Shown: piece after piece, positions 1-36,105 of the stretch | Position numbering within the stretch: the stretch's first letter is position 1 | Layout of the letters: each line of letters opens with the position of its first letter | Assembly: GCA_965240325.2 (NCBI GenBank) | Contig: OZ251239.1 | Location: forward strand, 248,001 to 312,000 | DNA from: Rebecca billardiae RCC1528 | Taxonomy: Eukaryota; Protista; Haptophyta | DNA: 64,000 nucleotides | Direction of reading: 5' to 3' | Made by a program: the position numbers and the translations under genes | Notes under the pieces: generated by a model | What the model was told of the DNA's origin: nothing | Databases searched by the model: none | What the model saw: the letters and a program-made list of their open reading frames with translations, nothing else

Positions 1-389
1 GCTCGCGGCCGAGAGGCGCTGCCGGCGGATGCCGGGGCTGCCGGCGCTGCCGCGGCTGCTCGTCGCGCGCGACGTGGGGCTGGCGCGCGGGCCCTGCACC
101 TCCGTCACAGCCTTCACCGCGGTGATGAGCTTCGGCAGGTACTCGCGCACCGCCTCGTTCACGCGCGACACCGTCGCGAGCTCGAACGCCTGCACGATCG
201 ACCCCTCGATGTGCGCGAGCGCCGCCTGCGAGTACATGACGGCAAAAGTGTCGACCGACGCAATCAGCGCGCCGTAGTCAGGCCCTGCGGGGACGGGCGT
301 GATCTCGCGCGAGGAGCGGCTGAGCTTGGAGGAGATGCGGGGGCGCAAGAGCGCCGGCGTGCCGGAGGCGAAGCGCGCGCGGTTGATCC

Positions 390-420
<31 letters not shown>

Positions 421-3400
421 CGAGCCGTTGGATGCCTCGCTCACGCGGCGCGAGCGCAGCGGCGCCGAGCCAATCGGCACGACGACCACGTCGTCGAGCG
501 AGCCGCCGAGGGCGCGCCAGACGACGAGCTCGAGCACGCACCACAGCCGCTCGACGAGGGTGGGACCCCAGAGCACGAGGAGCTGCCGGCACCGGCCGAG
601 CCGGACGGGCACGTGCGCGAGCTCCTCCGCCGGCCGCAGCGCCGGGCTGGCGCACAGCGCGTCCACCCACACGACCGGCGCGCGGCCGTGCTCGGCCGTG
701 AACGCGGCCGCGCGCGCGCGCAGCGCGTCGAGCTTCTGCGCGGGGTCGTCGCCCCACGAGTGCACGACGTAGTAGTCCGCGCTGGGCAGGCCGTCGTGGC
801 TGGAGAGCTCGACCTCGGCGCGCGCGAGCTGCACCGCCGCGAGCCCGTCGCCGGCGGCGGCGCGCGCGCGCAGCTGCTCGAGCAGCTGCAGCGCGCGCTC
901 GCGCTCCTGCACCGCCGCCGCGCTCGCGCCGCCGCCGATCGAGTCTTCGCTCACGTCCTTGGAGAGGCCGGGCGGGCCTCGGGCGCGGAGCATCTGGCGC
1001 CAGCGGCCGCCCTCGACGCCGCCGGAGCACGAGCCGTCGCCCTCGCTGCCGCCCGCGCCGCCGAAGCGGCTGCTGCCGCACGCCGGCGAGGAGGAGGAGA
1101 GGGCGCCGCCGAAGCGCTGCGCGCACGCGGGCGAGGGCGCGCCGCCGCTGCCGCAGCCGACGCCCGGCGCGACCGCGCCCGTGGCGATGCCGCCGAGGCT
1201 GCCGGCCGAGCCGCGCCTCGAGCTGGACCGGGACGTGCGCTGCGCGCCCGCCGCCGGCGATGCGGGCGCACCCTCGCGCCGCACCGAGTCTCGCGACGAG
1301 GACGAGCCGCGCGCCACCACCACGACGCCTTGCAGCTCGCTAATGGCCGCCGGGTGGCCGGGCGCGCGCCTGGCAAAGTTGAGCGCGGACGAGGCGAGCA
1401 CGGCCGCGTCGAGGCGCACCGGGCGCATGCACGCCAGCGCGAGCCCGACCAGCGCCTCCGGGTCGTTGTCGATCGCCTCCTTCGCCGGCGCGCCGAACCC
1501 GAGGATCGGCGCGAGGAACGCCGGACCGATCGAGAAAAGTCCGGACTGCGGCGCCACCGCCTTGGTCAGCCACTCCTGCAGGTGGCGGCGGCATGGCGGC
1601 CAGTGGAGCAGCCCGGCGACGAGCACGCCGACGAGCGGGTCGGCGAAGGCCAGCGCGCGGGCGGGCGGCGCGTCGGCCGCGTAGTACCCGAGCGCGTCCC
1701 GCGCGATCGTGAACCCGAGCGAGAGCAGCGAGTGCGCGCCCAGCCAGCTCCCGACCGAGGAGACCAGGCCGTGGTACAGCCGCCGATTATGCGAGCGGTG
1801 CTGCCGCACGAGCGCGTGGATGCGCGCGGCGGCGATGGTGAAGGAGAAGGCGAAGAGGAGCGAGGACACCGCCTGCAGCACCAGCGCGCCGTCGCCCGCG
1901 AGCCGCGCCGCGTGCGCGCGCCCGAGCTCCAGCGTCGCCGCGAGGAACAGCAGCTGCGCGGCGGCGAGCACTCCAAACACCGCGCGGCCGATCACCGAGA
2001 GCCGCACAATCAGGCCGACCGGGTCGGAGGGGTGCAGCGCGAGCATGCACGCGGGCAGCAGGAGGTACAGCGCGAAGATCACGCTGAGGTGGTACAGCGC
2101 GAAGAACGCCGGGTCGACGTAGTACGCCACCGCGAGCCCGAGCCCGGCGGTGGGCGCGAGGTGTGCCAGGTACCCTAACCAGAGCAGCAGCGTCGCGGCC
2201 CAGCCGACGCACGCGGTCAGCAGCGCGGCGTTGGACACGCGCTGCTGCGAGAGGCGCGCCTGCGCGACCGAGCGCTCGACCACGTCCATCAGCAGCGCGC
2301 GCGCCACCACGGCGCACTCGCGCCTCGGCACGCCGAGCGAGAGCGCCAGCGAGTCGCCGGACGCCGTCACCACCGGCGCCACGCGCGCCACCGCGAGCGG
2401 CGCGGCGTCGAGCGCGACGGGTGGAGGGCCGATGCAGCAGTCGAAGAGGCGGCTGCGCCGCGGCGGCGTGGGCGAGGAGGGCGGGCCCGGCGGCTCGGGC
2501 ACGACGCGCGCGCGCTTCGACCGCAGGCTGTCGCCGCGGCTCGTCGCCGCCGTCGGCGAGCTGCCGCCAACGGCCGCGCGCGAGGGCGGAGGGCCGCCGC
2601 CGCCGCTCGCCGCCGCCGACGCGGCAGCTGAGGGGTTCGTCGCGTCGGGCGCGACGCCCGCGGCGGCGTTCATGCTCAGGCCGCCCTCCTTCGAGGAGCG
2701 CGCGGAGAGCGTGGTGCCGCCCATGCTCATCTCCTCCTCGCCCTCGCTGCTGTCGCGCGCCATCTCCAGCGCGGTCGGCTCATACGACTCGGACCGAAAG
2801 ACGGCGGCGGCGCGGCTCCCGCCGCGCATGACGATGCCGGGCAGCGGACTGCCCGGCGGGAGCGAGGAGACGGGCGAGGCGAGGCACGTGCTGTCGTCGG
2901 CGAAGGAGATGCGCGCGCGCAGCCGCGTGTGCGGCACCACCTCGCCCGGCTTGCCCACCTCGCCGCCCGAGCCCCCCGCGTCGACGAGCGCTCGGCGGCT
3001 GCCCTCGCGGCTCCCGCTGTGAACAAGTGGCCTGGGCCCGGGCGACAGGAGCACGCCGCCCTGCTGCCGCGTGGCGAGGATCACCTCGTGGTACGTGTCG
3101 CGAAGCAGCTTGAGCACGAAGCGCACGTCGGGCGCGTTGGCGGGCTGCAGCAGCAGCAGGTGCCGCACGCCGTTCACCGTGATCGCGCGCGAGTCCGAGA
3201 AGGCCGTGGCGGTGTGCGGCAGTGCTGTCATCAGCGCGACGACTGCGAGCGATCGAGGCACGCGCGGCGGGCGCGCGCGGGGTGGCGCGTCGGGCGCGGG
3301 GAGCCGTCAGCCGCGGCGTCGGTCGGCGCGCGCGCGGGGGGCGAGCGCGCACGGCGGCGCCACGGGCACGCTCGCGCGCGACCACCACCACCACCGCGCC

Positions 3401-4728
3401 GCGCCGCGCCGCGCCGCACCGTCGTACGGCTTGACGAAACCGTTGAGGTGCGACACGATCGGAGCGCTCTCATCCAGCTGCTCGTAGCCCTCCTCCTCAA
3501 AGACGGCGACGGCGACGCCGCAGAAGGTCTCGAAGTACCACTGCTTGGTGCAGCGCGCGGGGAGCTGCCCGGCGCACAGCTTCTGCCACAGCCCCTCCAG
3601 CCCGAGGAACTGCGCGTCCGCCAGGTAGCGCATCACCGGGCACTTGGCGCGCTCGGCGAACGAGCGCGCGAGCTGCATCGGCAGCATCGGCACCGCGTAA
3701 CGGGAAGTAACGGTCATCGGCACGCCGTGCTCGAAGCAGAAGGCGTACGTCGCGCGCGCGCCGTCCATGTCGAAGCCTGACGCGCGGCGCGCGCGCGGGC
3801 GGGCGGCGCGCGTTGGCGTGCGCGCGCGCGCGATCGGCTCGCCGGCACGGCGCGCGCCGCGCGCCGCGGCCGTCGCTCGCGGGCGCGCCTCGCGCCGAGC
3901 GCGCTCTCACCGTTGTTCACGGAGCTGTCGGGTGCCCAGCCCGACTGCTGCGACTCGTCGCGCTCGAGGCCGCCCTGGATCGCCATCAGCCGCACCTTGC
4001 TGACGAAGTGCGCAGGGTCCTCCGCCATCAGGTCCGCCACATCGCGCAGCGACGAGATGCACACGATCGTGAGAGACTGGTCTGCCGAGTCTGCCAGCAC
4101 CGAGCGCAGCAGCTCGGCGCCGCCGTGCAGCTGCGCGTCGTCGACGTCGGTGTACCCCGCGAGCCGGTACTCGTGCGGCTGCGCCGCCGTCTCGCGCCCC
4201 GCCGAGCCGATCCCCACCGGCACGTCGTCCGCGTGCACGTGGTCCAACACGCAGCGCGCGAGCCGCGCGCGACGGATCGGCTGCCCGCCGCCGTTCGCGA
4301 CGACCGCGCGGAGGGTGAGCTGGCCCTGCTTGTGCATGATGGCGCATACGAGCAGGGCCTGGAGCACGGCGCGGGACGCACACCCCGCGCGCACGCGCGA
4401 GCGTACGCGCGCGCAGGGGCGATGCACCAGGCCACAGGTGAGCGGCGAGTGCTCATCACGAGCGTTGATGAGCTCCGGCGAGGTGCACGGCGCGCGCGCG
4501 GCTCATGCCGCAGACGCGCGTGCGGCGAGGCGGCGTGGGCACGCGCGCTCGGCGCGGGGAGGCGGGCGCGATGCGATCCACGGGCCGCGCGCTCAAGCAC
4601 GCGCGCCACGGGCCGCCCTGCCGCACCTTGACATCATCCGGGTCCGGGCCCGGGTCGGTGATCAGCGCTATTTGCAAGCCTTGCGGCCGGCAAGCGGCGT
4701 CGCGCTTGCGGCCGAGTAAGCTGCGCAT
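1..4728 (-). CDS. Nucleoside hydrolase-like / ~6TM / TIR(HET)-like fusion protein, copy A (3' end runs off the window)
   Basis: Hand-spliced exons 4728-4627, 4358-3911, 3776-3420 and 3242-<1, all GT..AG and frame-consistent. N-terminus has ITDPGPDPDD, ISSLRD, IQGG, SVNN.FD and KPYD (IU-nucleoside hydrolase-like motifs). About 6 hydrophobic helices at ~2230-1590. TIR/HET-like domain at ~780-480: DYYVVHSWGDD...VWVDALC...LLVLWGPTLVERLWCVLEL. The last exon is missing from the ORF track because it has no stop inside the window. Confidence 0.85.
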
Positions 4729-5929
4729 GGCGAGCCTATGCCCACGCGACTCGAACGCGGCCCGCCTTGGCGCCCGTCGCCGCGCCTGGCGAAGGCCGGG
4801 GCCACCTGGGGCGGTCCAGCCCTTCGCCCACCGGGACGCACCGGGACACACTACACTACGCCTGTCACGCGCTGTTGACTGTTCATTGGATGCCGAGGGT
4901 CACGCAGCAGTCTTTTCGAGAGCAGATTCGATATTCTCTCAGGCTTCATTTCAGATTGACGCAGCCTCATCAATGCAGCGCAACTCTGATCCCTATGTGC
5001 ACAGGCGCCTTTTACCCAGTCTTTTTACCGTGTGAAAGTGTATTCAGAGCGGGTTAAAGGCCACATGTCACGCTCGAGGCAATATGTAAGGTATGCCGGT
5101 ATCACCCACTCCGAAGCGTACCAGTAGCGAGAGGCCGGCCTGATACAGGGCCACGCGAATCTTCAGGCTCACAGCTAATGAATGAAAGGCGCATCAAAGT
5201 ACTGCAGCACAGGAATCCTTGCCTAATAACGTATCACGACGCGTGAGCTCGCCGCGGAGGCGGCGGCCGCGAGGGCGGCCGCGGGCGCGATTGATACCCG
5301 GGACCCAGAGAGACAACTCGGATGACGAGATCTTCCCATCCGACGCCGAGGACGGCTCTCCTGAGGCGATCGCGCTCGATGACGGTCGTGATTTGGACGA
5401 CTGATGGCGATGCGCGGCGAAAGGCGGAGGAGAGTGGCGCGGCGCAGGGCTTCGAGCCGGTTGTGGCGATGGAGCAACCTATCATCGCCAACGTCGTCGC
5501 CCCGAGCGCCGCCGCGCTGCCGCACGCCACCGTCGCCACGCCAGTATGCCAGTTGCGCCAGTGCAAGCAGCCGGCGTGGCCGCGCCGCTGGCGAGGCCGA
5601 GTGAGTCGGCCTGCCCGCGATCGCGGAGTATCAAAGCCGCGGGGCCGGCGTGGCCAGCTGCCAGCAGAGCGGTGGCCGCGGTGCTCAGGGTGTTGCAGGT
5701 GCGACCAGCGCGCCGCTGTCATCGCGTGCCCGCAAACAATTTAAGAGGGAGTCGCTATAATGCAGTTCGTCCCGCCGCCCGGCCTGCCAGCCACTTACTA
5801 ATTGACGTCGAACAGTTTTTAATCGCCGGTAACCGGGAAATCATTAAATAGCCGGCGGCGCCCTTAGTATCGAATTAATATCGGGCTTATTGCCAGCAGC
5901 GCGGCCGCCGCCGGTGGCGGTAGCTAATA

Positions 5930-12819: not shown

Positions 12820-14003
12820 TCAGGCCCGGCTCCCCCCGGTCACACGCCTGGCCATCACCACGGGTCGTTCACACGACGGCGTCGAGACGACGCTGGCTGT
12901 GACCAGCTGCGGCAGCTGCGATGATCGCGGCCGCCGCGCTGCCACAACGTCCGGAGCAGTGGCTGTGCTGCTGGCGCGCTTCCGCTGTCGCTTGGCGGCG
13001 CTCGTCACTTCGTTGGGGCTCTTCATGTCTTGCTGCAGCCCGCGCGTGTGCCGACCTGAACTCCGATGGCGCTTCATGCCGGCCAGCTTGTGCGCAGCGC
13101 AACGGCTGGCGCGCGCGTCGCCCGGCATGCCGAATGAAGGCCCCGCGGTGCAGCCTGTGTGATCGCACTTGGGGTGCTTCAGGTCGACCATGCCGGCCAG
13201 CTTGTGCGCAGCGCACCGGCTGGCGCGCGCGTCACCCGCCATGCCGTAGGAAGGCCGCGTGGTGCAGCCCGTGTGATCGCACTTGGGGCTCTTCAGGTCG
13301 ACCATGCCGGCCAGCTTGTGCGCAGCGCACCGGCTGGCACGCGCGTCACCCGGCATGCCGAAGTGAGGCCGCGTGGTGCAGCCCGTGTGATCGCACTTGC
13401 GGCTCTTCAGGTCGACCATGCCTGCCAGCTTGTGTGCAGCGCACCGGCTGACACGCGCGTCGCCCGGCATGCCGTAGGAAGGCTGCGTGGTGCAGCCCGT
13501 GTGATCGCACTTGCGGTTCTCCAGGTCGACCATGCCGGCCAGCTTGTGCGCAGCGCACCGGCTGGCGCGCGCGTCACCCGCCATGCCGTAGGAAGGCCGC
13601 GTGGTGCAGCCCGCGTGATCACACTTGGGGTTCGTAACGTTGACCATGCCAGCCAGCTTGTGCGCAGCGCACCGGCTGGCGCGCGCGTCGCCCGGCATGC
13701 CGAAGTAAGGCCCCGTGGTGCAGCCCGTGTGATCGCACTTGCGGCTCTTCAGGTCGACCATGCCTGTCAGCTTGTGCGCAGCGCACCGGCTCGCGCGCGC
13801 GTCGCCCGGCATGCCGTAGGAAGGCTGCGTGGTGCAGCCCGTGTGATCGCACTTGGGGTGCTTCAGGTCGACCATGCCGGCCAGCTTGTGCGCAGCGCAC
13901 CGGCTGGCACGCGCGTCACCCGGCATGCCGAAGTAAGGCCGCGTGGTGCAGCCCGTGTGATCGCACTTGCGGTGCTTCAGGCCGACCATGCCGGCCAGCT
14001 TGG
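12820..14003 (-). CDS. EsV-1-7-type cysteine-rich repeat protein (5' end uncertain)
   Basis: Eight 38-aa repeats CDHTGCTTxPxxGMPGDARASRCAAHKLAGMVDLKxxK followed by a basic NLS-like tail (KRQRKR). The frame opens mid-repeat just after a plausible CAG acceptor (14006-14004), so an upstream exon is likely. Confidence 0.8.
13074..14001. repeat. 114-bp coding tandem repeat, 8 units
   Basis: gatc(g/a)cactt recurs at 13161, 13275, 13389, 13503, 13617, 13731, 13845 and 13959. Confidence 0.95.
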
Positions 14004-14192
14004 CTGGGATTGGGAAGGCGACCACGACCCTGGCCTCGCCCGCCGTCGCGCGCGCCTCGAGTTGACGAGCACCCACGCCGACGCTTTTCAGACTCGAACG
14101 TCACTTCCCCTGGGTACTGTCTGGTACTCTCCTCCGGACTGCGCCGCCATCGTTACTCGGCGGGCACAGCCCGTCTGGGGTTAACCTCACAG

Positions 14193-20138: not shown

Positions 20139-20296
20139 TCACCCTTGGTGAGGCCGCTCGAGCGACTTCGTGTCTGGCGAGGCAGATCGCGCCAGTGCGT
20201 GGCGATCGAGGCAGACGCCTGCCTCGCCGCTTGGCGAGGCAGCTAAGCTAGTCAAGGGTGTCCAGCAGCCCCGCAGGACTGCTCCGGCCCGAGGCG

Positions 20297-23200
20297 ATGG
20301 CCGACGAGTGGTTCGACGCGGCGGAGGACTTGGAGAAGGCGGCGGCGGCGGCGCAGGGGTCGCTGGCGCCGCCGCGGCCGCTGCCGGCGCAGGCGGGGCC
20401 GAGGCGATCGCGCTCGTCTGTCAGCTTCTACGAGGAGCTCGTCGAGCCCGAGCCCACCCATCTCGGCGCGGCGGTCGAGAGCGGCTTCAGCGTGCGGCTG
20501 GTGCGGCTGCGCGCGCGCGAGGTGCGCCACGTGTTCGGCCCGCCGTCGTGCGAGCTCTTCGCGACGGTGAGCTTCCAGAACGGCCTCGCCAACGCGCGCG
20601 GCCGGCGCACGGTGGTCTTCCGCTACCGCGACGTCCTGCTGCTGCACGCGCGGCTCTTTGTGGCGCAGCCGTGGGCGTACGTGCGCTCGGGCGCGGCGCG
20701 CCGGCTGAGCCTGGTGCCCAAGTCGGCGGCGGGCCGCGCGCGCGACGTGCGGCTGGTGGAGTCGGACGTGCGCGCGCTCGTCGAGTCGCACGGCTCCTCG
20801 GCGCACGTCCTCGCCTTCCTGCGCACGTCGCGGCTCGCGCTCACGCCCGCGCACGCGCGCGCGGCGCTCGCGACGTACGCACGCGTCAACGTGCAGCACA
20901 TCGACGGCGTGCTGGAGCAGAAGCCGTGGGTGGTCGCGGCGGAGCGGCTGGGCGGCGCGTGCTCGCCCGCGTGCATCTTCCAGGGCTACCGCGGGCTGCT
21001 CACCCTCCTCGGCTTCTACGCGCTGCTCGGGCTTCTCGGGTTGCTGCTTGAGCTGCTGCTGGGTGAACCGCGCCGGCCGGGGCCCAAGGCGGCGCTGCTC
21101 GCGCTGTGCGTGCTGGCGACGGTGGTGCCGCCGTGCTACTGCCACCGCGTGGTGCTCCGGCCGAAGAAGCGCCGGCGCGGCTGGCTCTCCGCCCTCGGCG
21201 CCGCGCTCTTCCTCGGCGCCACCCTCGGGCTGCGGCTGCAGTGGGGTGCCAGCTTTGCGCGCCACGAGGCGCGCGAGCAGGCGGCCGCGGCCGCGGCCGC
21301 CCACCCGGCGGAGGGCGCGCACGGCGGCGGCGGCGGCGGCGGCGCGGAGGCGTCGCGCGCGCACGCGCTCGGCGACGCGGCGCTCACCGTCGAGGCCTTC
21401 CTCCTCTGGTCCGCCATGTTCGTCACGCCGGCGTACATGCTGTACTGGTGGATGGCCGCGCCCGCGCGCCGGCGCACGCTCTGGGTCGAGCTCCGGCCCT
21501 CGTCGATCACGCTGGCGCGGGGGCCGGACGCGCGGCGCGCGGAGCTGGTGATGCTGCTCGACTCGCACTTCGCCGCGCGCGCCGTCGAGGGCACGCCCGC
21601 CATCGAGCTCAGGAACACCATGTCCGAGCTCTCGCTCGAGCTGGGCTCGGTCGGCGCGCGCGACCAGTGGTACTCAGCCATCTGCGCGGCCGCGGCGAGC
21701 TCCGCGCGCGTGCTCGCGCGGCACGGGCACGGGGCGGGCGCGCCCGCGGGTGCGCCCGCGGCGGACGGCGCGGCGGGCGAGGCGGCGGGCGTGCCCGCCG
21801 CCCCGGCGCCCTCGCCGCCGCGCGCGCGCAGCCCCGCGCCGACCCGCCTCGGCCGCTCGGCTCGCGTGCCGAGCGGCGCGCCGCCGCTGAGCGGAGGCGC
21901 TCGGCTGAGCGGAAGCGGCGGCGCGTCGGGCGCGCGGCGGGGCGCGCAGCGCTCGCGGCGCAGCGGCGCGACGGCGGAGCAGCACTCGTCGGGCAGCGTC
22001 GACGCCGAGCTCTACGTCTCGATCGAGGACACGCCGCTCCCGCCGCTCGGCCCGAGCGGCTTTGCGCAGCACCCTCACGGCGCCTTTGCGCCTGTGCGCG
22101 CGCCGTGCGAGTGGGAGCCGCACCCGTGCGAGGAGGAGGAGGAGGAGGAGGAGGAGGAGGAGGAGGAGGAGGAGGAGGAGGAGGAGGGCGGCGGCGTGGC
22201 GGGCGCGCCGCGAGAGGACGCCGCGCCGGCCGCCACCGTCGTCGACGCTCGCTCGGGGGAGATGGGCATGGGCGGCGAGGCGCGCTCGGGCGCAGGCGCG
22301 GGCGCGAGCGCGGGCGCGGGCGCGGGCGCGGCCGGCGGCGCGGGCGCGGCCGGCGGCGCGGGCGCGGCCGGCGGCGCGGCCGAGGCCGGCGGCGGCCGAG
22401 GTGGCGCGGCGGGCGGCTGGGCACGGCGGGAGGACGGGCCGAGCCCGCGCGTCTCGGGCGCGAGCGCGCTGCCCCCGCCGCCGCGCCGCTCGCGCTCACA
22501 CACCGCCCGGCCCCGGCCCAACCCGACCGAAGCAATTTGGTTTGTCGACGGCGCGGGCTATTTTGCGGCCGTGCACGCCGCCATTGCGGCCGCGCGACAC
22601 ACGGTACTGATCGCGGACTGGTGGCTCACGCCGCACCTGTTCCTCACGCGGCCGGTGGACGGCGCGGAGCTCGACGCGCTCGAGCGCACGGCGGCGGCGC
22701 GCGCGCCCCCCGCCACCGGCGCGCCCGCCGAGCGCGCCGAGTCAGTTGACGTCGGGGAGAGTGCTGACAGCTCAGCGCTGCTCGCGCGGTGGCGCGCGCG
22801 CGCGCCGCGCCCGTCGTCGGACGACGCGAGCTCGAGCGTGGGCGCGCGCTCCTCCGCCTCGCTCGGCGGGCTGGAGGCGGGCGAGGGCGGCGGCGCGGGC
22901 ACGCGCGGCGGCGGCGCGGGCGCCGCGTGCCGCGGCTCGCCTGCCGACGCGAGCGCGGCGCGGCGCGCGGCGCGCGCGCGCGCCGCGCACGCCGGCGGCG
23001 CCGCAGCTGACGCCGACGGCGGCGGCCGCCTCGACTTGCTCCTCCAGCGGAAGGCGCGGCAGGGCGTGCACGTGTACGTGATGCTGTTCAAGGAGCTCTC
23101 CTTCGCGCTCGGCATGCGTTCCCGCTGGGTGAAGGCCTGGCTCAAGTCTCTCGACAAGCGCATCCACGTCATCCGCGACCCTGACTTCATCGCGCGCCAG

Positions 23201-25713
23201 CTCGGCCGCTGGTCGCACCACGAGAAGCTGGTCGTGGTGGACGCGGAGCTCGCGTTCGTCGGCGGGCTGGACTTGTGCTACGGGCGGTACGACACGCCCG
23301 AGCACCCGCTCTTCGACCCGGCCGGCCGCACGTTCCCCTGGCTCGACTATCACAACCTGCGCCTCGAGCCACTCGGCGACGTGGTGGCATACGCACGCGA
23401 CGTGTTGCGGCGTGACGGCAGCGCGGGCGCGGCCGCGCTGCGCGCGTGCGCGTCGCGCGAGGGCGGCGAGGCCGCGGAGGGCGGCGGCGGCGGGGGCGCG
23501 GCGGCGGCGGCGGCGGCGGCGGCGGGCGCGGAGGGCGGGCGCGCGCAGCCGCGCATGCCCTTCCACGATGTGGCGTGCGCGATCACCGGCCGCGCGGTGC
23601 TCGACGTCGCCTGGCACTTCACGCAGCGCTGGAACTACGCCGCGCGAGTGAAGGCGATGGGGGTGCCACCGCTGGTCCCTCCGGAGCGGCAGCACTCGGG
23701 GCACGCGCAAAGGCTGCTCCGCGCGGTGGCGCGCGCGACGGCGCGGCCCGAGCTGCGCGGCACGTGCAGCGTGCGCGCGTACCCCGTGAGCTGCCAGGTG
23801 CTCCGCTCCGTCGGCCGTTGGTCTGCGGGCTGCCCGACGGAGGCGTCCATTCTCACCGCCACCCTCTCACTGATTGCGGAGGCTGAGCGCTTTGTCTACC
23901 TCGAGAATCAGTTCTTCATCTCGTGCGCGCACGACGAGGCGGGCCAGGACGAGCCCACCAACCAGGCGCGCGCACACTGCCACGCCAGCGCAGCGCCGGC
24001 GCGCGCGCGCGCGCGCGCTCACCCGCCGACGTGCGCGCCCGCGCACGCTGCGATGCGCCGCTGACGGCTGCTGGCCTGCTGGCTGGCCGGTGTGCCGCGG
24101 GTGTGCGCACGCTGTCGCGCGCGCGGCGGCGCGCGCAGGTGGCTCGCGCGCTGTATGCGCGCATCATGCGCGCGGCGGCGGAGCAGAGGACGTTCCGCGT
24201 GATGGTGGTGGTGCCGCTCTTCCCCGTCGCGGGCGGGCACGCCGACCCCGAGCAGAAGTCGATGACGATCAACTTGCTGATGCACCAGCTGTACGCGACC
24301 ATCTCGCGCGGCGGTCGGTCGCTGCTCGAGCGGCTGCGCGCAGCGGGGCTCGAGCCCCGCGAGTACGTCGCTTTCTTCGGGCTGCGCACGCACGGCACGC
24401 TGAGCGCGGCGGGCGGCGGCGCGGGCGCGGGGCCGGCCTCGCCGCCCGCGGGCGCGTGCTGCGCCTCGCTCCCCTCCGCGCCCCGCGGGTTCGTCAACTA
24501 CAACGGCCCGCCGCCGGTCGTCGAGTCTGAACAGGTGTACGTGCACTCTAAGCTGATGATTACTGACGCGCGCTGCGTGCTGATTGGCTCGGCGAACATC
24601 AACGACCGCTCGCTGCTCGGGGAGCGGGACTCGGAGGTGAACGTGCTGCTGCGCGACGCGGACGAGGGGGGCGGCGGGCTCGGTGCCGCCGCGTCCGCCG
24701 CGGACGCCGCGGACGCGGCGGCCGGCGCGGCCGAGCGCGCTGGCGCGCCGCCGCCGCCGCCGCCGCGCGTCGGAGGCGGCGCGCCCAGCCTCGCGCGCAC
24801 GCTGCTCGCGCAGCTGCTCGTGGAGCACCTCGGGCTGGAGCGCGCGCCGGCGGAGCTGCGCGACGAGATCCTGCGCGACCCGGCGGGCGAGCGCGCGTGG
24901 GCGTCGGTCCGCGCCATCGCCGCGTCCAACACGCGCCTCTTTGACCGCGCGTTCCGCTGCGTGCCGATGGATGATGTGACGTCGTTCGCGCAGCTCGACG
25001 CGCTGCGGAGGGGGCGGCTGGGCGCGTCGGCGAGGCCCGCGGGCGGCGGCGCCGGGCGCGGGTGCTCGGGCTCGGGCACGCCCTCACTCAACTCCAGGCG
25101 CTCGTTCGGCTCGTCACTCTCTCAGACCGGGCGGGGCATGCTCCGCTCACTCGACACGGCGGCGCTGCGGCTCGCGCCTGCGCTGCTGCAGCAGCCCGAG
25201 CCGCGCGCCGCGGCGGCGCTCGGGTCCGAGTCGAGCGGCGGCGCGCCGGGGCCGCTGCGCCCGGCCGGGAGCGTGGCGCGCTGCTCGGCGCTCACGCTGC
25301 CCTCCGTGTACTCCTCCGAGGCCGAGCACTCCGACCGCTCGGTCGTGCCCGACGCCGCGGCGCTCGGCGCAGCCGGCGCGCTCCGCCCCCGCGCCGCCGA
25401 TGCCGACGCGGCGAGCGCGCAGCCGCCGCGCTCGCTCGCGCACGGCGTCGCCGAGGAGGCGGTGGACGAGCCGGACCCGCTGGGTGGGCTGGCGCCGGCG
25501 CTCGCCGACGTGGGCGACGCGTCGCTGCGGATGGACTACGCCGCGACCGCGCTCGGGCAGCACCTCAACGCCGCGGCGGCCGTGGACGTGTCGATGCTCG
25601 AGCTCGTGCAGGGCCACCTATGCGAGCTGCCGCTCGACTTCCTGCGCGACGAGCAGCTGCAGCCCGAGCACCCGAACAGCCTGATGCGCGAGCTCATCGA
25701 GACGGTGCAGTAG
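20297..25713 (+). CDS. PLD: Phospholipase D (PLD1/2, PX-PH-like class) with transmembrane segments in the N-terminal region
   Basis: Two HKD motifs: WSHHEKLVVVD..FVGGLDLCYGRYD and YVHSKLMITD..IGSANINDRS. Also WFVDG..YF, IADWWLTP, PRMPFHDV, FTQRWN, YLENQFF and RDSE. Exons 20297-23965 and 24139-25713 are joined by a GC-AG intron (EPTNQ|VARALYARI). Confidence 0.93.
22130..22186 (+). repeat. (GAG)19 poly-Glu tract within PLD
   Basis: Read directly from the sequence. Confidence 0.95.
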
Positions 25714-26276: not shown

Positions 26277-29200
26277 ATGAGGGAGGACTTCCTCGTCATC
26301 TGCGACCCGGGTCCCGACCCAGATGACGTGAAAGGTGCGCCCCGCGCGCGCGGCGCGTGCGATCGCCGGGCCGCGCGCCGCCGTCTCGCTGAGCTCGCTC
26401 ACTCGCTTCCCCCGCGCGCCGCCGTGCCGTCCACGCGCCGCGGCTCGCGAACGCGCGCGTGCAGTCATCGTCACACTGGGTGTGCTACACAAGCAGCGCG
26501 CGGTGCGGCTGCGTGGCGTGATCGCGAACGGGAGCCAGGCGCCCGAGGACCGCGCCGCGCTCGCGGCGTGCGTGCTCACGCACGTCGGCGTCACCGGCGT
26601 CCCGGTCGGCGTGGGCGCGTGCGGCCCGGCCTACGAGGCCAAGCCGCACGAGTTCGCGCTGGAGGGGTACGAGGCGGTGAACCGCGCGGCGCGGCTGGTG
26701 GACGGCGCGCAGCTGCTCATGCGCCTGCTCCGCTCGGCGCGGCCGCGCTCGCTCACCGTCCTGTGCATCTCCTCGCTGCGCGACCTCGCGGACGCGATCG
26801 CGTCTGACCCCGAGCTCGTGCGGCGCGCGGTGTGCCGCGTGGGCGTGCAGGGCGGGCTGGAGCGCGACGCGTCGAGCCAGTCGGGCTGGGCGCCGGACAC
26901 GGCGCAGAACAACGTGTACGACATGGACGCGGCGCGCACCGTGTACGACTTCTGCCTGCTGCGCGCCGTGCCGCTCACGGTCGTGTCGCGCGACTGCGTG
27001 CCGCTGCTGCCGATGCAGCTGGCGCGCTCGTTCGCGCAGCGCACGCACTCGCCCGTGCTGCGGTACCTGGCGGACGCGCAGTTCCTCGGGCTGGAGGGGC
27101 TGTGGCAGAAGCTCTGCGCCGGCCAGCTCCCCGCGCGCTGCACCAAGCAGTGGTTCTTCCAGACCTTCTGCGGCGTCTCCGCCGAGCACTTCTCGCGGCG
27201 CCGGTACGAGCTGCTCGGGCCCGACGCGTCGATTCTGCACCACCTCAACGGTTTCGTCAAGCCGTATGACGTGGTGGCGCTGATGGCGGTGCTGCCGCAG
27301 ACGCGCGCGCACGTGCTCCCCGAGGGCGCTGCGTTCCACAGCGCCGCGCACCCCGCCGCCGCCTCGCGCACGCCGCCGCTCATGTCGATCTCGCTGCCGA
27401 TCTCGCCGGCGCGCGCGCTGCGTCTCTCGTGTGCCTCGCGCTCAGCGACCGGTGCGCTCGAGCTGGGCGTGGACGGCGGCGCGGAGGCGCCGCCGGTGCC
27501 GCCGCGCGGGATGGGCTGCGGCTCGAGCGCGCCGACGCTCGGCGGCTACCTCTCCCCCTCGCCCTGCCCCTCCACCGCCGCCACCTCCAGCTGCAGCGCC
27601 TCGCTGAGCGCGTCGGCCAACGCGTCCGGCCGGCCGAGCCCGCCGCCGCGCCGCCGCGGCTCGCGCACCGCCGACCTGCCGCCGCTCGGCGCGGGGCTGG
27701 AGTCGGCGGCGCCGCCCGTGCTCGAGGCGCAGCCGAGCGGCGGCAGCAGCACCGTCGGCGGCGCCGCCGCCGCGGGCGCCGCGCTCGACGAGCGCCACTG
27801 GCTGCTGCTGGACCCGCGCCACTGTGTGCCAGAGTCGATGGTACTTGTTTTACTCCGGGATATCTACCATGCGGTTTCGTTCGCCGGCGCGCCGGCGGCG
27901 CCGGGCGAGCGGCGGCGGCGGCGCGGCGAGGCGCGCGGCGCGGGGCGCGCGCATACGCCGCCCCGCGCGCGCATCGGCGAGACCGCCTTCCGCTCGGCGC
28001 GCGTCGCCTCGGCGGGCGGCGCGCACGCCGCGTTCGCGGCATGCCACGAGCTGCTGGGCACGCAGCGCACGTCCGGCGGCACGCTGACCGACCTGCAGAT
28101 CTGCGCGCTGCTCGAGGCGGCGCTCTCGCAGGCGCGGCGCGCGCAGAAGCGGCTGGCGGACGCGGCGGTGAGCGTCGGCGCCATTCTTTTCCTCCTCGCC
28201 ACCGCCGCCGCCATCGCCGACCAGGCCGTCGCCGCGCGCCGGCTCGCGAGCGCGCGCGCCGGCGCCGCCGAGATTGTGCATCTCGAGATCGCGCATCTCG
28301 CGCGCGCGCCCTTCTACGCGCTGCCCGCGGTGCTCGGGCTGCAGATCGTCCTCGTGGCGATGCCGCCGTCGGACGCGGCGCAGAGCCTTGCGCGCGCGGC
28401 GTGCGTCAGCGTCGGCGCGGCGGGCGCCACTTCCTGTGCGCTCGGCGCGTGGGCGATGAGCACGCGCCTGGGGCTCCACCGCAGCGCCTACTCGGCGGCC
28501 GTGCTGGCGCTCGCGGGCGGCCAGCTCGCGCTCGCGGCGTGCGTGCTCGCGTCGCTCGGCGCGCACTCGGCGCGGCTGTGGGCCCGGACGCACGAGCTGC
28601 TCGGCAGCCTGTGGCGCCACGTCGCCGCCGCCATCTTCGCCTTCGCCCTCCCGAGCGCCGCCATCTTCGCCGTCGTCGCCGCGGCGCAGGCTGCTGGGCT
28701 GCACGGCGCCGCGCCGCGCCGCGCGCTGCTGATCGCCGACCTTGGGGCGTGCGCGCTGCTCGCCGTCGCCGGCGCGCTGATGCTCAGCTCGGGGCGGCGC
28801 GCCGCGCTGCAGTCGTGGGTCGCGCGCAGGATCGGCGCGCGCGGCGAGCTCGCCGCGCTCGCGCCGCTGATTGGCTTCGGCTCGGACGAGGCCGTTGACG
28901 TGGCGGGTCTTGTCGGCCACGCGCGGCACGCGCTGTGCGGCGTGCGGCTGCGCCGCGGCTGCGAGGGCGAGCTGCGGCGCTGGTTCGGCGCGGACGGGGG
29001 CGTGGGCGCGGAGGGCGGCGGACGGGACGGGCGGCGGCGCGTCGGCTCGCCCGCGCGCGCGCGCGTCGGCGCCGCCGCTGCCGCCGTGCCCACCTCGCCG
29101 CAGCGCTCGCGCGTGGGTAGCGGCGGCGCCGACGCGCGCGGCGGCGCCATCGCCAACGCGGCTTGCGGCTACACCTGCCGCGTGCCGCCGCGGCCGGCGC

Positions 29201-30038
29201 ACGCGGGGCAGACGACGCCGCTGGCGACGTCGGCGAGCGGCACGCCGGGCGGCGCGACGCCGGCCAGCCTGGGCACACCCGCGTGCTCCACGCCCGCGCA
29301 GCGCTCTCGCTCGCCGAGCACGGGGCCCTGCAGCCGGCAGCCGTCCTGCCCCGCCAGCCGGACTCCCTCCGGGCCCAACTCCCGGCGTGGCTCCTACGGG
29401 ACGGTGCCGGCCGCGAGCGCCGTGGGCGCGCTCGGCCGCACGCGCGAGGAGGGCGAGGGCAGCGGCTCCAAGGCTTGCTCTCGTAAATCTTCGCGCTCGA
29501 GCAGCCTCTCAGGGGCGTCCACCATCGTGGGCGAGGCGATCGCCAAGATGCGCTCCTCCGCCAAGCTGCCCGGGTACGGCCGGCCAGCGGCGGCGCGCGG
29601 GCGAGCCGGCGGCGCGGCGGGCGCGGAGGAGGCGCTCGGCACGGACGAGGAGGGCGGCGCCGAGCGCGACGATGCGGAGGGGGACGCTGGCCGGGCGGAG
29701 CGAGGCGCGCCGCGCGCGCGCGTGCGCGTGCGCTCGCCCACGCGCGTGAGCACGCTCAAGAGCCGCATGTCCGCGCCCGCCCGGCTGCGCGCCACGCGCG
29801 GCACGGCGTCCGACGCGAGCCCCGAGCGGCCGGCCAACGGCGCGGCCGGCGGCGCGCGCGCGGACGCGGCCGCGGGAGTGCGCCCTGGCGGCGGCGGCGC
29901 AATGCACCCTTGTGCCTCCATGCCAGCAAGCATGGGCCGCGGCCGCGCGAGCGCCGCGGCCGGCGCCGCGCCGCCGCCCGACCCGTCGGGCACGCTGCCC
30001 GTGAGCGGCAGCTCCATCTTCGAGGCGTTCCGCTCGCT

Positions 30039-30069
<31 letters not shown>

Positions 30070-31224
30070 AGCGTTGGCAGCGGGCGCAGCTCGGCGCAGC
30101 TGCTCTCGCCGGGCGGCGGCGGCCGCGCGCCGCGCGGCCGCGAGGGCGTCGACTGGCGCGACCAGCTCCCGCGCGTGGACGCATTCGTCGTGCACTCGGA
30201 GGCGGACGACGGCGGCGCCAAGGCGGCCGCGCTCGCCGGGTGGTCCCGCGCGTTCCGCGCGCGCGAGGGGCGCTCGCCCGTCGTGTGGCTCGACGCGGCG
30301 TGCGCGCCCGACGGCCTTCCGCCGCACCGGCTGCTTGCGTACACGCCTGTGTTTCTCGCACGCAGTCGCTCGCTGCTGCTGCTCTGCGGGCCTCAGATCG
30401 TGGACTCGCTCTGGCCGGTGGCGCAGCTGTACTGCTGGCACGCGATGGGCGGCAGCTACCGCCACGTGGAGGTGCAGGTGATCGGCGGCGACGCGGCGAC
30501 GCGGCTCGAGGCGGTGGCGGCGCTGGACGCATTTCACGTCGCCATCGCACGCGCATCACCGCTCGCGGCGTGGGGCGGCGGCGGGTGGCACGGCGCGGGC
30601 GCGCTCGGCGGCGGCAGCGGCTCACGCTGCAGCCGGCTCAGCCATGAGCAGCGCAGCAGCGTCAGCAGCGCCGGCAGCAGCTTCCGAGGCGCCTCGCGCC
30701 TCTCCCGCAATCTCGCCAAGGCGCGCCGCCGGCTCGCGCACGCGGTCGAGCTCTCGGGCGCGCAGCTCTTCAACGAGCTCGTCCGCGAGTACGTGCCCGT
30801 GGTGCGCGCGGCCGCCGGCGCAACCGACGACGACGCGGCGGACGGCGAGACGGACACGGACACGTGCCGCGACGACGACACGCCCTTCGACACGGAGCTC
30901 GACGACGACGACCTGTCGATGTGCGACGAGGACGACCTGCTCGACGAGCTCGACGGCGACGCGTACGCGCGCAACACCGAGCGCGATCTCGAGATGCAGC
31001 AGATGGACGCAGTGATTGACGTGCGCGTCGGAGTCGTGCGGTCGGCGTGCGTGCCGCTGCCGAGCACGGCGCGCGCCTCAGCGCCGCTGCCGCCGAGGCA
31101 TCCTGGGCCGATCAGCAGGGAGCGCCCTGAGCCCTGGTCGGCGAGCCTCCCGGGGTCGAGCGAGCCGCCAGTGTCGTCGATCACGCGCGCCGCGTACTCG
31201 CGTCATCCGCAGGCAGCAACATGA
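26277..31224 (+). CDS. Nucleoside hydrolase-like / ~6TM / TIR(HET)-like fusion protein, copy B (catalytic Glu position is Gln)
   Basis: Exon 1 is 26277-26334 (MREDFLVICDPGPDPDDVK), then a GT-AG intron 26335-26464, then exon 2 to TGA 31224. Hydrolase motifs ISSLRD, VQGG, AQNNVYD, KPYD. About 6 TM helices at ~28160-28790. TIR-like domain at ~30170-30480: DAFVVHSEADD...VVWLDAAC...LLLLCGPQIVDSLWPVAQL. Confidence 0.87.
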
Positions 31225-33280: not shown

Positions 33281-34875
33281 ATCTCCGACTCCAATAATAA
33301 AACTGTGCCCTGCAGCGGGCGGGGGGGTCGGCGGGCCGTGCCAGTGCTGTCGCAATGTTTCCTCGATCTACGGGTTCGCGTCTTTCCACAGCATTCGCTC
33401 GTGGCCGGGTGACGGACAGTCGGACCAGTGACACCTGTGACTCAGTTCTCCCACGCGGTGCGGTACGCGACCGCGTTCGCGCGCATCAGCGAGGCCCACC
33501 GACCCACGAGGGAATGTGCAGCACGCGGGGCGGGGCGGGTAGCCCGTTGCTCCGCGCGAGCGCGGGTACGCGCTGTATGTGCCGCATCTCGACCGCGATG
33601 GCGTAATCGAGCGCCTCGCCACCGACGAAGCCGCCAGAGTAGATCGTGTGCATGTCCTCCTGCCGCCAGCCGAGAGCGGTCGTCGCGAAGACGCTTGCCG
33701 ATGTCCGCTCCGGGCATGATGGGCTCGGCGCAGGCCGCGTTGACATCGTGCACGGCCGCCAGGCTGAGTACGAGCGCGTTGACGTTCACGCGGTCGTCGC
33801 TCTTCGCCTCTTCGACAGGTCTGGCGCCCGCGTGTTTGGCGGCACGAGGAGCTGTTGGTTGTGCGCGCACGCGCGCACAGCGACAGCGTGTGCCACTCGC
33901 GATCGAGAGTGGGCACGAGCTGCTCACGCAGGCACACGAATCGCAGCGCATCCGTCACCGGCGTGACGACGTCGGCCTCGTCCCGCAGCGCCTGCGCCAT
34001 GGACGAGGATAGCGCGGCGATGTTGCATGCTCGACGATTCATCTCTCTGCGGATGGCATCACGGGCTTGTCTGTGTCGCGCTGCGGCGAGGGTCGCCAAC
34101 TGGCGATGACGCGGTTGCTGCCACGGCGACAGACCCGGGAGGTGCGTGCGCTGCGCGTCGTACGCCGTTGGCGCTGCGCTTCCGTCGCATTGGTCATCGT
34201 CGACGCCATGCAGGCCGGACGTGTGCTTCGGCTGAGGGACCGCGAGCGAGCGACGCAGAGTCCGGCGCGCGGATTCCGGCGATCGAGTTCAGAAGGCCGC
34301 GCCAAATCTTGCGTCGCGTGCGATGGCGCTTCCCGCCCGCGAGACACCTCGTGATGAGGGCCTTTCCGCACCGAGCCCGACGCGCGGCGGTGGATCGCGC
34401 GAGGTGGCTGTCGTGCGCAGCGCTTGATGTTATGGCCCGTGCGAGCGCTCGATGTGCAAGTCGGGCGAGGATCGCCCCAGGTCGCACGATCGTGTCGACG
34501 CGCCGAGCGTGCCTGCAGACGCGTCGACTTTAGCCCGCGTTTGACCTGCACGCGAGACGACGAGGGCAGCAATCGCGAATCGGGCGAAAAGCCCCCTCGG
34601 GAGTCCTCTCACGATGTCCGCGCCGGCGTTGGATTTGGCGCGCGCCGCCCATGCGCTCCGCGCCATCGGGTAACTCTTTTTCGGCCGAGCGTCCCCAGTG
34701 GGAGCTGCGAGGGCGCCCGGTAGTGAGCGAAGCGATTTTCTTCTCTTTGCGAGGCGATCTTCTTTTTCCTTTTCTTCTTTTTCTTATCTTTTCCCCGGGC
34801 ACACTACGGCAGGGGCGGACCTACCTACCCGCCATAAATCGCGCGTGCGACGCGCGTTTGACATTGTCATCAATC

Positions 34876-36105
34876 ATGATGCGGCCCAGCCGCCACCCTC
34901 CGTCCGCCACGGCCGGCGTCGCGGTGGTGGCCCTCGCCCTCGTTTCCGGCGTCCTGGTGCGCCCTGTAGAGGGCGCCCTCTTTGCACGGCGGCCAACGCC
35001 GTTCGCGGCCGCGGGCTGCCGCCACTCCGTGCGCGGCGCGCGCGGCGCACCGCACGCCGTGGCCCCCGCGCTCGCCACGGTGTCTCCTCGCGGCGAGCCG
35101 CGCTCTCCCCGTCACGTCTTCCTGGGCGTGCTGCCGGCGGTGGCGTACGGCGGCCTTGCTGCGACCACCATCGTCGCGGCCTCGCTGCTCGTGCCGATCC
35201 TCTCGGGCCCCGGGGCCCTCGCCCTCATCGGCGGCACGATTGGCATTCCGGCGGCCACGCTCGCGGCGCAGGTGCTCGGCCCATCCGGCGGCCGCATCGC
35301 GCGCAGCATGGGCGGCGTGCCCGCGGGCGCGGAGCTCGTCGCGCTCGCTCGCGAGGCCGCCTCGGCCGTGGGCGTGCCCGAGCCCAAGGCCGTGTACAGC
35401 ATCCCCGCCCGCGAGGCGAATGCGTTTGCGACTGGCCTTCGCGGCAACACGGCTGTCGCCGTCACGCAGGGCCTCGTGGACTCGCTGAGCGAGCGCGAGC
35501 TCAAGGCCGTGCTCGCGCACGAGATGGGCCACCTGAAGCACAAGGACGTCGGCCGCAACATGCACGTCGCCATCGCCGCGGCGGGCCTGGGCGGGGTATT
35601 CCGCGCGGGCCAGGGGCTGCTGCGCGTGGCGAGCCAGCAGCAGCAGCAGCAGCGCGCCGGCGGGGCGGCCCCGCGGAGTGCGCGCGCGAGGGACGAGCGG
35701 GGCGAGACGGACGAGCCCGCGTCCCCCGGGGCGCTCACGGGCGTGGCCGCGGCGCTCTGCGTCGCGGGGCTCACCACGCAGGCCATGGCGCACGCGCTCC
35801 GGCTCGGCGCGAGCCGCGCCGCCGAGCTCGAGGCCGACCGTGCGGCCGCTGAGGCGTTTGGCGCGGACGCGCTCATCTCTGCGCTGCAGAAGATCAGCCA
35901 GGGCGCGCGGACGCACGCTGACCTGCGCAACAGCGCGCTTGGTTCGTCCATGGCCCACGTGATGATCAGCAACGGGCCGGGCGCCGCGCCAGTGACAGCC
36001 GACGCGCCGCCCACGCTCAACCGCTTGCTCGGCCGCGCGCGGCAGCTGCTGAGCACGCACCCGTCGCTGGAGGTGCGGGTCGCGGCGTTGCGAGCGATCC
36101 GCTGA
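34876..36105 (+). CDS. htpX: M48 family zinc metallopeptidase (HtpX-like), probably plastid-targeted
   Basis: NAFATG, VAVTQGL, ELKAVLAHEMGH (HExxH), SRAAELEAD, LISALQKI and STHPSLEVR. The N-terminus has a signal peptide plus an R/A/S-rich transit-like stretch. Intronless. Confidence 0.9.
   Translation: MMRPSRHPPSATAGVAVVALALVSGVLVRPVEGALFARRPTPFAAAGCRHSVRGARGAPHAVAPALATVSPRGEPRSPRHVFLGVLPAVAYGGLAATTIVAASLLVPILSGPGALALIGGTIGIPAATLAAQVLGPSGGRIARSMGGVPAGAELVALAREAASAVGVPEPKAVYSIPAREANAFATGLRGNTAVAVTQGLVDSLSERELKAVLAHEMGHLKHKDVGRNMHVAIAAAGLGGVFRAGQGLLRVASQQQQQQRAGGAAPRSARARDERGETDEPASPGALTGVAAALCVAGLTTQAMAHALRLGASRAAELEADRAAAEAFGADALISALQKISQGARTHADLRNSALGSSMAHVMISNGPGAAPVTADAPPTLNRLLGRARQLLSTHPSLEVRVAALRAIR

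Follow-up and report, generated by a model that had tools for sequence, protein, structure and literature searches.

Glutamine at the presumed catalytic-glutamate position of a TIR-like domain in a pavlovophyte family of XopQ-like hydrolase fusions

The 64,000-nt stretch analyzed here (the window; Rebecca billardiae RCC1528, contig OZ251239.1, positions 248,001 to 312,000, with all coordinates below counted from its first letter) carries two related genes, copy A on the minus strand, which runs past the window start and whose last residues are missing from the window, and copy B on the plus strand (26277-31224). Both are members of a large pavlovophyte (haptophyte) multigene family, in which a XopQ-like nucleoside hydrolase is followed by five to six hydrophobic segments and then by a TIR/HET-like domain. 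In copy B the TIR-like domain has glutamine (Gln) in the column in which copy A has the glutamate (Glu) presumed to be catalytic, and since the Trp of the HSW motif and T84, R88 and C91 are lost as well, this domain is most likely a non-catalytic pseudo-TIR that would have lost NADase activity. The reading that we favor, with a probability of roughly 0.55, is that copy B is a maintained family member whose pseudo-TIR has a docking, assembly or ligand-binding role and modulates the signaling of Glu-bearing paralogues, without being the dedicated partner of copy A. By itself, a single Glu-to-Gln paralogue among many is of modest weight; the fusion family stands out more.

The difference between the two copies was read directly in the window, and it is the one on which the earlier sequence-only reading had built: copy A has RLWCVLEL with a GAG Glu codon at 531-529 (minus strand) and an intact HSW, and copy B has SLWPVAQL with a CAG Gln codon at 30424-30426 (plus strand) and HSE in place of HSW. 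The corresponding frames run ...YYVVHSWGDD...GPTLVERLWCVLELVVW... in copy A (minus strand) and ...AFVVHSEADD...GPQIVDSLWPVAQLYCW... in copy B (plus strand), and the CAG of copy B is a single base from GAG. BLASTP aligned the two C-terminal domains without a gap (54 of 109 residues identical, 50%; E 1e-17), so that the Glu/Gln and Trp/Glu differences are differences between aligned columns. When all six frames of the window were scanned with a hidden Markov model (HMM) of the family, A (E 3.5e-52) and B (E 2.5e-45) were the sole copies. The TIR/HET-like core with HSW and RLWCVLEL lies at 442-807 (minus strand) in copy A, as placed by the family HMM, AlphaFold and Foldseek, and the core of copy B, from predicted strand A (VVHS) through strand D and including HSE and the Gln at the Glu column, lies at 30157-30522 (plus strand) by the family HMM, AlphaFold and VIA-align.

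Models of the two domains were obtained with AlphaFold on alignments of 108 and 111 sequences; here and throughout, exons were searched and folded separately, not as a joined spliced protein. The mean predicted local distance difference test score (pLDDT) was 82 for copy A, with 161 residues at or above 90, and 84 for copy B, with 159 such residues, and the core exceeded 90 in both. Residues 148-176 of the copy B model fell below 50, and the helices at 183-240 were mostly above 90. A Foldseek search of the PDB with the copy A model returned TIR domains in all of the top 50 places (RUN1, RPV1, MyD88, RPS4, SPARTA, AbTir, SARM1 and ThsB among them; E from 2e-3, probability 1.00). Structural alignment with VIA-align gave copy A Z scores of 11.2 with RPP1, 11.1 with RPPT-TIR, 10.9 with AbTir and 9.9 with SARM1, and copy B scores of 10.4 with RPPT-TIR, 10.1 with RUN1, a third of 9.9 within the set RPP1, RPPT-TIR, AbTir and RUN1, and 8.9 with SARM1, over 114-146 residues, the copy B alignments spanning model residues 10-236 and thus taking in the helices after the disordered loop. 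Both A and B show the flavodoxin-like alpha/beta fold, with parallel strands A-E and helices A-E, that marks the TIR superfamily (STIR clan). PDB matches from a single-sequence search with the domain of copy A (parvovirus capsid, HIV Env linkers) were set aside as low-complexity artefacts of its Gly run.

Enzymatic TIRs (RPP1, RUN1, AbTir, SARM1 and the SPARTA TIR-APAZ protein) are the best structural matches of both copies, at Z 9-11, and the W-x-x-x-E with which they begin helix C is complete in copy A, whereas in copy B the Glu is gone. Unlike these enzymes, A and B share only 9-16% sequence identity with them and have no Pfam TIR match, and their HSW and WxDxxCxDQ motifs are nearer to those of HET domains. 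Pfam TIR, TIR_2, ThsB_TIR and HET models gave no match to A or B at E up to 1, and across the family the matches were weak, for HET in 32 of 108 sequences (best E 0.0065), for TIR_2 in 26 (best E 3.9e-5), for TIR in 4 and for ThsB_TIR in 2. Because the matches of its members to both are weak, we place the family in the TIR/HET superfamily, below both Pfam thresholds. Like the fungal HET domain (PF06985), the family has WxDxxCIxQ after strand B and W..(Q/x)E at helix C, but its HET matches stay under the Pfam threshold, and it is non-fungal and fused to a hydrolase and membrane block rather than to NACHT/WD40; its atlas neighbors are auto-named HET- or TIR-domain fragments from Haptophyta. After strand B, where a BB loop would be expected, the conserved family motif is WxDxxC(I)DQ; copy B keeps W48, D50 and C53 and reads PD for DQ, and copy A reads SP.

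The identity of the Glu column was taken from a core-only family profile, which matched the TIR domain of chicken TLR15 (E 4.8e-4) in two collinear stretches, DafvshSwhD aligning with DAFISYSEHD and LagcrkLlvLaGptylerlwcvlElf with IENSHKVLFVLSPSFVNSCWCQYELY; TLR1 aligned alike. In this profile alignment to solved structures the family Glu column is the Glu of WCQYEL and WCHYEL in TLR TIR domains, and in both models it sits early in the helix after strand C. By alignment and by secondary-structure position, the Gln of copy B would then occupy the catalytic-Glu column of the TIR WCxxE motif, in line with what the sequence-only reading had supposed. Its premise that this Glu is required for TIR NADase activity and that a change to Gln is inactivating agrees with the literature: every TIR NADase examined depends crucially on the Glu (PMC13732033), and E264Q abolishes 3'cADPR (cyclic ADP-ribose isomer) production by a Chlamydomonas TIR whose group also contains haptophyte TIRs (bioRxiv 10.64898/2026.04.20.719644).

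An exhaustive phmmer search with the copy A domain found 1642 related proteins at E <=1e-3 and 759 at E <=1e-10, with the family consensus DaFvSHSWhDd..K..AL..W...F...hGR.P.vWlDk.CiDQ...L..LPvyLagC..LLvLaGPTY..RLWCv.ElF. Relatives carrying the hydrolase fusion come from Diacronema lutheri, in which at least 12 family paralogues lie on different contigs, from Pavlovales sp. CCMP2436, and from MMETSP transcriptomes and metagenomes. Among 170 domain instances the Glu column holds Glu in 143, Gln in 10 and another residue or a gap in 17. Non-Glu states occupy 24 of the 79 rows in the clade with hydrolase fusions versus 1 of 83 outside it, and supported branches require at least five changes in the column, the best tree having 13-14. 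A raw comparison of 137 Glu rows with 25 non-Glu rows showed that D12, H17, D21, L30, W33, R43, P45, W48, D50, L64, G82 and G102 are kept equally in both, and that S18, W19, K26, L67, T84, R88, W90 and C91 are lost preferentially where Glu is absent. From this we infer that the residues co-lost with Glu line the active site. Of the 26 positions that are highly conserved in the family, copy B retains 21; it has lost W19, D55, R88, C91 and E94, along with T84, a pattern that looks, at the level of aligned residues, like a relaxed active-site module on a retained fold. Position 90, the Trp of WCxxE, is itself Glu in 6 of the 25 non-Glu members, for which chance, shared ancestry or compensation could account.

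An alternative that we regard as unlikely holds that the C-terminal domain of the family is no NAD+-cleaving enzyme at all but a HET-like module with another mechanism or a pure assembly module, so that the Glu/Gln difference would be a structural or binding matter. It would fit the absence of Pfam TIR and HET matches in A and B and the similar frequency of HET and TIR_2 matches in the family, as well as the listing of HET biochemical activity as not determined (PMC12881547). It sits poorly with the conservation of the Glu and the preceding WC, which at 90% or more (alignment A3) are among the best-conserved positions and are lost jointly with HSW in a subset of members, as expected of an active-site module. 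It also runs against the enzymatic nature of the nearest solved structures (RPP1, RUN1, AbTir, SARM1 and SPARTA) and the finding that protist TIRs of haptophyte-including groups keep the Glu, those tested making cADPR isomers (bioRxiv 10.64898/2026.04.20.719644).

The Gln state is shared by relatives of copy B. The domain tree unites B with P0015 and P0029, which have Gln as well, at a Shimodaira-Hasegawa-like approximate likelihood ratio (SH-aLRT) support of 94, and the P0029 contig also encodes a hydrolase domain just upstream. A second Gln group contains P0067, P0156 and P0097, and the P0097 cluster contains D. lutheri KFE25_001723 (P0174), a gene that reads ...VDNLRTVAQLYAW... at this place. 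P0156 has the top identity to the hydrolase region of B, 61%, among word-search matches covering at least 90% of that region, and it reads HAE and VAQLY, the latter as in B. Across the six Gln-type domains (B and five others) V-A-Q-L is invariant, the overall identity to B is 41-53%, and a single clade for all six was not rejected in the approximately unbiased (AU) test (p 0.42). Given the nearest relatives and this invariance, the Gln is conserved around copy B, and because VAQL is unchanged in proteins so divergent and a single clade is not rejected, we regard the Gln state as old and maintained. In D. lutheri, the annotated start of KFE25_001723 has a full XopQ-like hydrolase directly upstream of it (L003 9461-10405 of JAGTXO010000018.1; 281 aa aligned to B at 52% identity), which indicates that the public model of this gene is truncated and starts inside the gene.

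The coding frame of copy B was also found to be intact. The mechanical open reading frame (ORF; 26335-31224, plus strand, 1629 codons) contains no in-frame stop, although shuffling leads one to expect 17.5 (none of 500 shuffles had fewer than 8) and each of the five remaining frames has 7-19; therefore its openness is not a side effect of the 75-80% G+C of the region (G+C across the window is 58-80%, and the genes bear introns). G+C at third codon positions (GC3) is 0.93 overall and 0.87-0.99 across every 300-nt window, TIR-like part included, so that together with the lack of stops copy B is to be taken as a maintained coding sequence and not an accident of base composition. The description of copy B as an intact ORF of about 1600 codons holds for the open frame, but the opening ~43 codons of the mechanical ORF are probably intron. 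When the identity of the TIR-like domain was divided by that of the hydrolase, Glu/Glu pairs came to 0.69, non-Glu pairs to 0.65 and pairs with B to 0.57-0.97, so that Glu-less domains are not diverging faster. Taking stops, GC3, structural residues, identity ratio and VAQL together, copy B looks constrained rather than neutrally evolving.

These data also bear on the idea, which we consider rather improbable, that copy B was recently disabled or is slowly decaying in its TIR-like part and that the gene persists only on account of its hydrolase and membrane parts. The frequency of non-Glu variants (24 of 79) and their several origins could mean weak constraint on the domain, and the terminal branch of B is somewhat long (0.75 versus a median of 0.54). 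However, Gln and VAQL are common to proteins only 41-53% identical, which makes the state old; the fold-determining residues are kept and the model is confident; the TIR-like domain diverges relative to the hydrolase no faster than in Glu-type genes; and the domain has a GC3 of 0.91 with no stops or frameshifts.

The sequence-only reading had cast copy B as a possible catalytically dead sensor, scaffold or inhibitor partnering an executor A. The dead-TIR part is reasonable and is strengthened by the conservation of Gln, as far as alignments and models can indicate; the dedicated pairing, of the kind known among plant receptors of the nucleotide-binding leucine-rich repeat type (NLRs), found no support. 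For a pair like RRS1/RPS4, in which the Glu-less TIR of B would heterodimerize with A and hold or release its activity, it can be said that the genes lie on opposite strands within one 31-kb stretch with their 5' ends facing, that one copy has the Glu and the other does not, as in the paired TIR-NLRs of Arabidopsis, where the sensor TIR is without the catalytic Glu or the BB-loop Asp (PMC13732033), and that B keeps the predicted fold and many surface-forming helices. Yet the two divergent genes are not adjacent head to head: their 5' ends (~4700 and 26277) are 21.5 kb apart, with a phospholipase D (PLD) gene, an EsV-1-7 gene and other, unrelated ORFs between them. A and B are only 50% identical and are not mutual closest relatives in the TIR-like domain tree, and the hydrolase-domain tree, in which the two hydrolase exons of copy A entered as separate rows, is a star that leaves orthology unsettled. 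The many paralogues of D. lutheri are scattered over different contigs, and no further family copy accompanies the Gln-type genes at L001 (7.7 kb), L002 (11.5 kb) and L003 (D. lutheri, 10-kb flanks) within those contigs or flanks; no synteny was found between the window and the neighbors at L001 or L002. No STAND (signal transduction ATPase with numerous domains) or NB-ARC module was found in the A or B proteins. We therefore hold a dedicated A/B pair to be improbable, and a looser network of Glu-less members with Glu-bearing paralogues to be possible.

Least probable of all is that the TIR-like domain of B is still an enzyme, either tolerating Gln or using a substitute carboxylate (the Glu of HSE, or Asp87 just before the helix), since E-to-Q abolishes activity in each TIR tested in the cited literature and further presumed-pocket residues are also gone in B. 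In TIR domains, the loop between strand A and helix A forms part of the wall of the NAD+ pocket. Position 19, which falls in that loop by the TLR box-1 alignment, is acidic in 5 of 25 non-Glu domains versus 3 of 137 Glu domains (Fisher p 0.002, phylogeny uncorrected), and it is Glu in B and P0156, but it is Thr and Ser in the nearest relatives P0015 and P0029. A relocation of the carboxylate to position 19 was rejected because the raw enrichment vanishes when non-Trp19 domains alone are compared (5/20 versus 3/36, p 0.12, not significant).

The favored reading of copy B as a maintained, non-catalytic modulator also draws on its hydrolase part. The N-terminal region of copy B (26465-27339, plus strand) matched XopQ structures 4kl0, 4p5f and 7jlu_B over ~270 residues with E 1.5e-18 to 5e-18, far better than the classical IU-nucleoside hydrolases (1ezr, 8ctm and 5tsq), which reached just E 3e-3, and Pfam IU_nuc_hydro scored 31.5 bits, under its cut-off of 34.2, with relatives P0005 and P0006 above it. 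The relation is thus to the XopQ/HopQ1 type III effectors, from which copy B differs in being eukaryotic, predicted to be membrane-anchored and fused to a TIR-like domain. Block 3801-3421 of copy A is 65% identical to B over 127 columns, KPYD of the copy B hydrolase aligns with LYD of XopQ, and both A and B carry DPGPDPDD in exon 1. The hydrolase domain of B looks intact. The membrane block of copy B, with five hydrophobic segments (5-6 in relatives) by Kyte-Doolittle analysis with a 19-residue window and a threshold of 1.6, lies at 28150-28791 (plus strand; ORF residues 606-819). XopQ hydrolyzes the TIR product 2'cADPR, and the residues mutated in that work were D120 and D399 (bioRxiv 10.64898/2026.06.15.732069).

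The mechanism that we propose begins with a copy B that would be transcribable and selectively maintained and would keep its TIR fold. Its dead TIR-like domain may serve assembly, docking or ligand binding while attached to a hydrolase that looks intact, and through this arrangement copy B might modulate or terminate nucleotide signaling made by many Glu-bearing paralogues, copy A among them. Given that XopQ cleaves 2'cADPR (bioRxiv 10.64898/2026.06.15.732069), removing or regulating the signal could be the main role of a Glu-less member whose hydrolase is conserved. A bolder version, which we offer as a speculation and consider unlikely, is that the VAQL genes form an "eraser-only" pavlovophyte lineage in which the dead TIR docks with Glu-type assemblies or binds their product and so brings an active XopQ-like hydrolase to the signal. 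If true, such a lineage would be a built-in terminator of eukaryotic TIR-type nucleotide signaling, using the same type of enzyme that is injected by plant pathogens against 2'cADPR.

Glu-less TIRs are already known as regulators in plants (RRS1-type sensors) and in animals. SIGIRR resembles copy B in that its Glu column is Asn (WCTTNF) within a strand C/helix C segment that is otherwise alignable. The TIR domain of SIGIRR is regulatory, not catalytic. It is, however, very distant from B (E 0.12), with another architecture and in another kingdom. The sensor TIRs of RRS1 and RRS1-like proteins, like B, have a TIR fold without the catalytic Glu alongside a related protein that has it, and in paired plant TIR-NLRs these sensor TIRs are thought to work by TIR-TIR association, not catalysis (PMC13732033). 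In contrast to RRS1, B is predicted to cross the membrane several times, has a hydrolase at its N-terminus and has neither NB-ARC nor leucine-rich repeats; it has no head-to-head adjacent partner, and the relatives examined do not preserve a linkage to a Glu-type gene. What is new here is an old, structurally constrained Glu-less lineage common to copy B and D. lutheri. The Glu loss is of the same kind as in those regulators, but in an algal family, so far uncharacterized, whose TIR-like domain is fused to a XopQ-like hydrolase; an enzyme of this type was recently shown to break down a signal made by TIRs. The old and recurrent Glu-less state provides natural "dead" and "live" versions of the family domain for comparison, and it suggests that haptophytes independently evolved a division of labor between TIRs with and without catalysis.

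Several points weigh against this reading of copy B. The term "catalytic Glu", as applied to the A/B family, is drawn from homology, given that the domain lies under the Pfam TIR and HET thresholds and that the HET mechanism is listed as not determined (PMC12881547). The co-loss of residues with Glu is a raw comparison, and a phylogenetically independent test, limited to 4 usable pairs, lacked power. The free tree keeps the two Gln clades apart, and their union is simply not rejected by the AU test. No ortholog close enough for an estimate of non-synonymous to synonymous substitution rates (dN/dS) was found in word searches with B residues 1265-1500 and 1280-1392 or in metagenome scans; in those scans the domain of B returned none, and the six-member Gln-type alignment returned one Glu-type locus, L004.

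The proposed gene model of copy B comprises two exons. Exon 1 (26277-26334, plus strand), located by motif search and three-frame translation with the GT donor at 26335 read directly, holds the start codon and the Asp-rich N-terminal hydrolase motif, MREDFLVICDPGPDPDDVK plus one base. The inferred intron 1 (26335-26464, plus strand; 130 nt, GT..AG) lies inside the mechanical ORF, and exon 2 is placed at 26465-31224 (plus strand). Splicing restores the frame: joining G(26334) to TC(26465-6) gives Val, and the resulting ...DDVK-V-IVTLGVLH... matches DDVK-A-ILVAGVLH of P0156, whose sequence begins with the same DPGPDPDDVK motif that is found in exon 1 of copy B and in copy A. The predicted protein is 1605 aa after splicing. 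Past the TIR-like core, a low-complexity loop and C-terminal helices that complete the TIR fold by AlphaFold and structural alignments occupy 30523-30870 (plus strand), and an acidic C-terminal tail with the stop codon, assigned from the translation and a GC3 of 0.91, occupies 30871-31224 (plus strand). At 27330-27790 (plus strand), between ...VLPEGAAF and RHWLLLD, copy B has ~150 extra low-complexity residues where copy A has ~8, and because GC3 is 0.92-0.97 there, this stretch looks like a coding expansion and not an intron.

Copy A has at least three introns, with exon blocks near 4656, at 4364-3888, at 3801-3421, and from 3243 to the window edge. Its exon 1 region (4600-4756, minus strand, approximate limits) reads MRSLLG...ITDPGPDPDDVK, with the motif at about 4656. 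The hydrolase-domain exons (3421-4364, minus strand), whose two blocks are in different frames, were located by tblastn of family proteins and have approximate boundaries. The upstream part of the last long exon (808-3243, minus strand) is a continuous frame with the hydrolase end, linker and hydrophobic segments, to which homologues align at 3243-3070 and in the membrane block. Beyond its TIR-like core, the loop and C-terminal helices of the TIR fold occupy 1-441 (minus strand), structural alignments reaching model residue 237, and there the gene leaves the window. A Gly/Ser/Arg-rich low-complexity insertion with pLDDT below 50 follows strand D at the same place in both copies (A 304-471, minus strand; B 30550-30690, plus strand). 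The transcript-derived relative P0151 is without it (tblastn blocks 837-472 and 303-100), and the copy A insertion could be either a loop or an unrecognized in-frame intron of 168 nt.

Among the neighboring genes, a 417-aa ORF between A and B (12820-14076, minus strand) has eight EsV-1-7 cysteine-rich repeats (Pfam PF19114, E 7.6e-110), a repeat family named after an Ectocarpus virus gene. Also between the two copies, at 20258-25713 (plus strand), two overlapping long ORFs each contain one HKD motif of the phospholipase D type (PLDc, E 3e-8 and 3e-6); they probably make up a single two-HKD PLD gene interrupted by an intron or a change of frame, and the region ends ~560 bp upstream of the copy B start codon. 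Downstream of copy B lies a Peptidase_M48 ORF (34651-36105, plus strand; E 8.9e-30).

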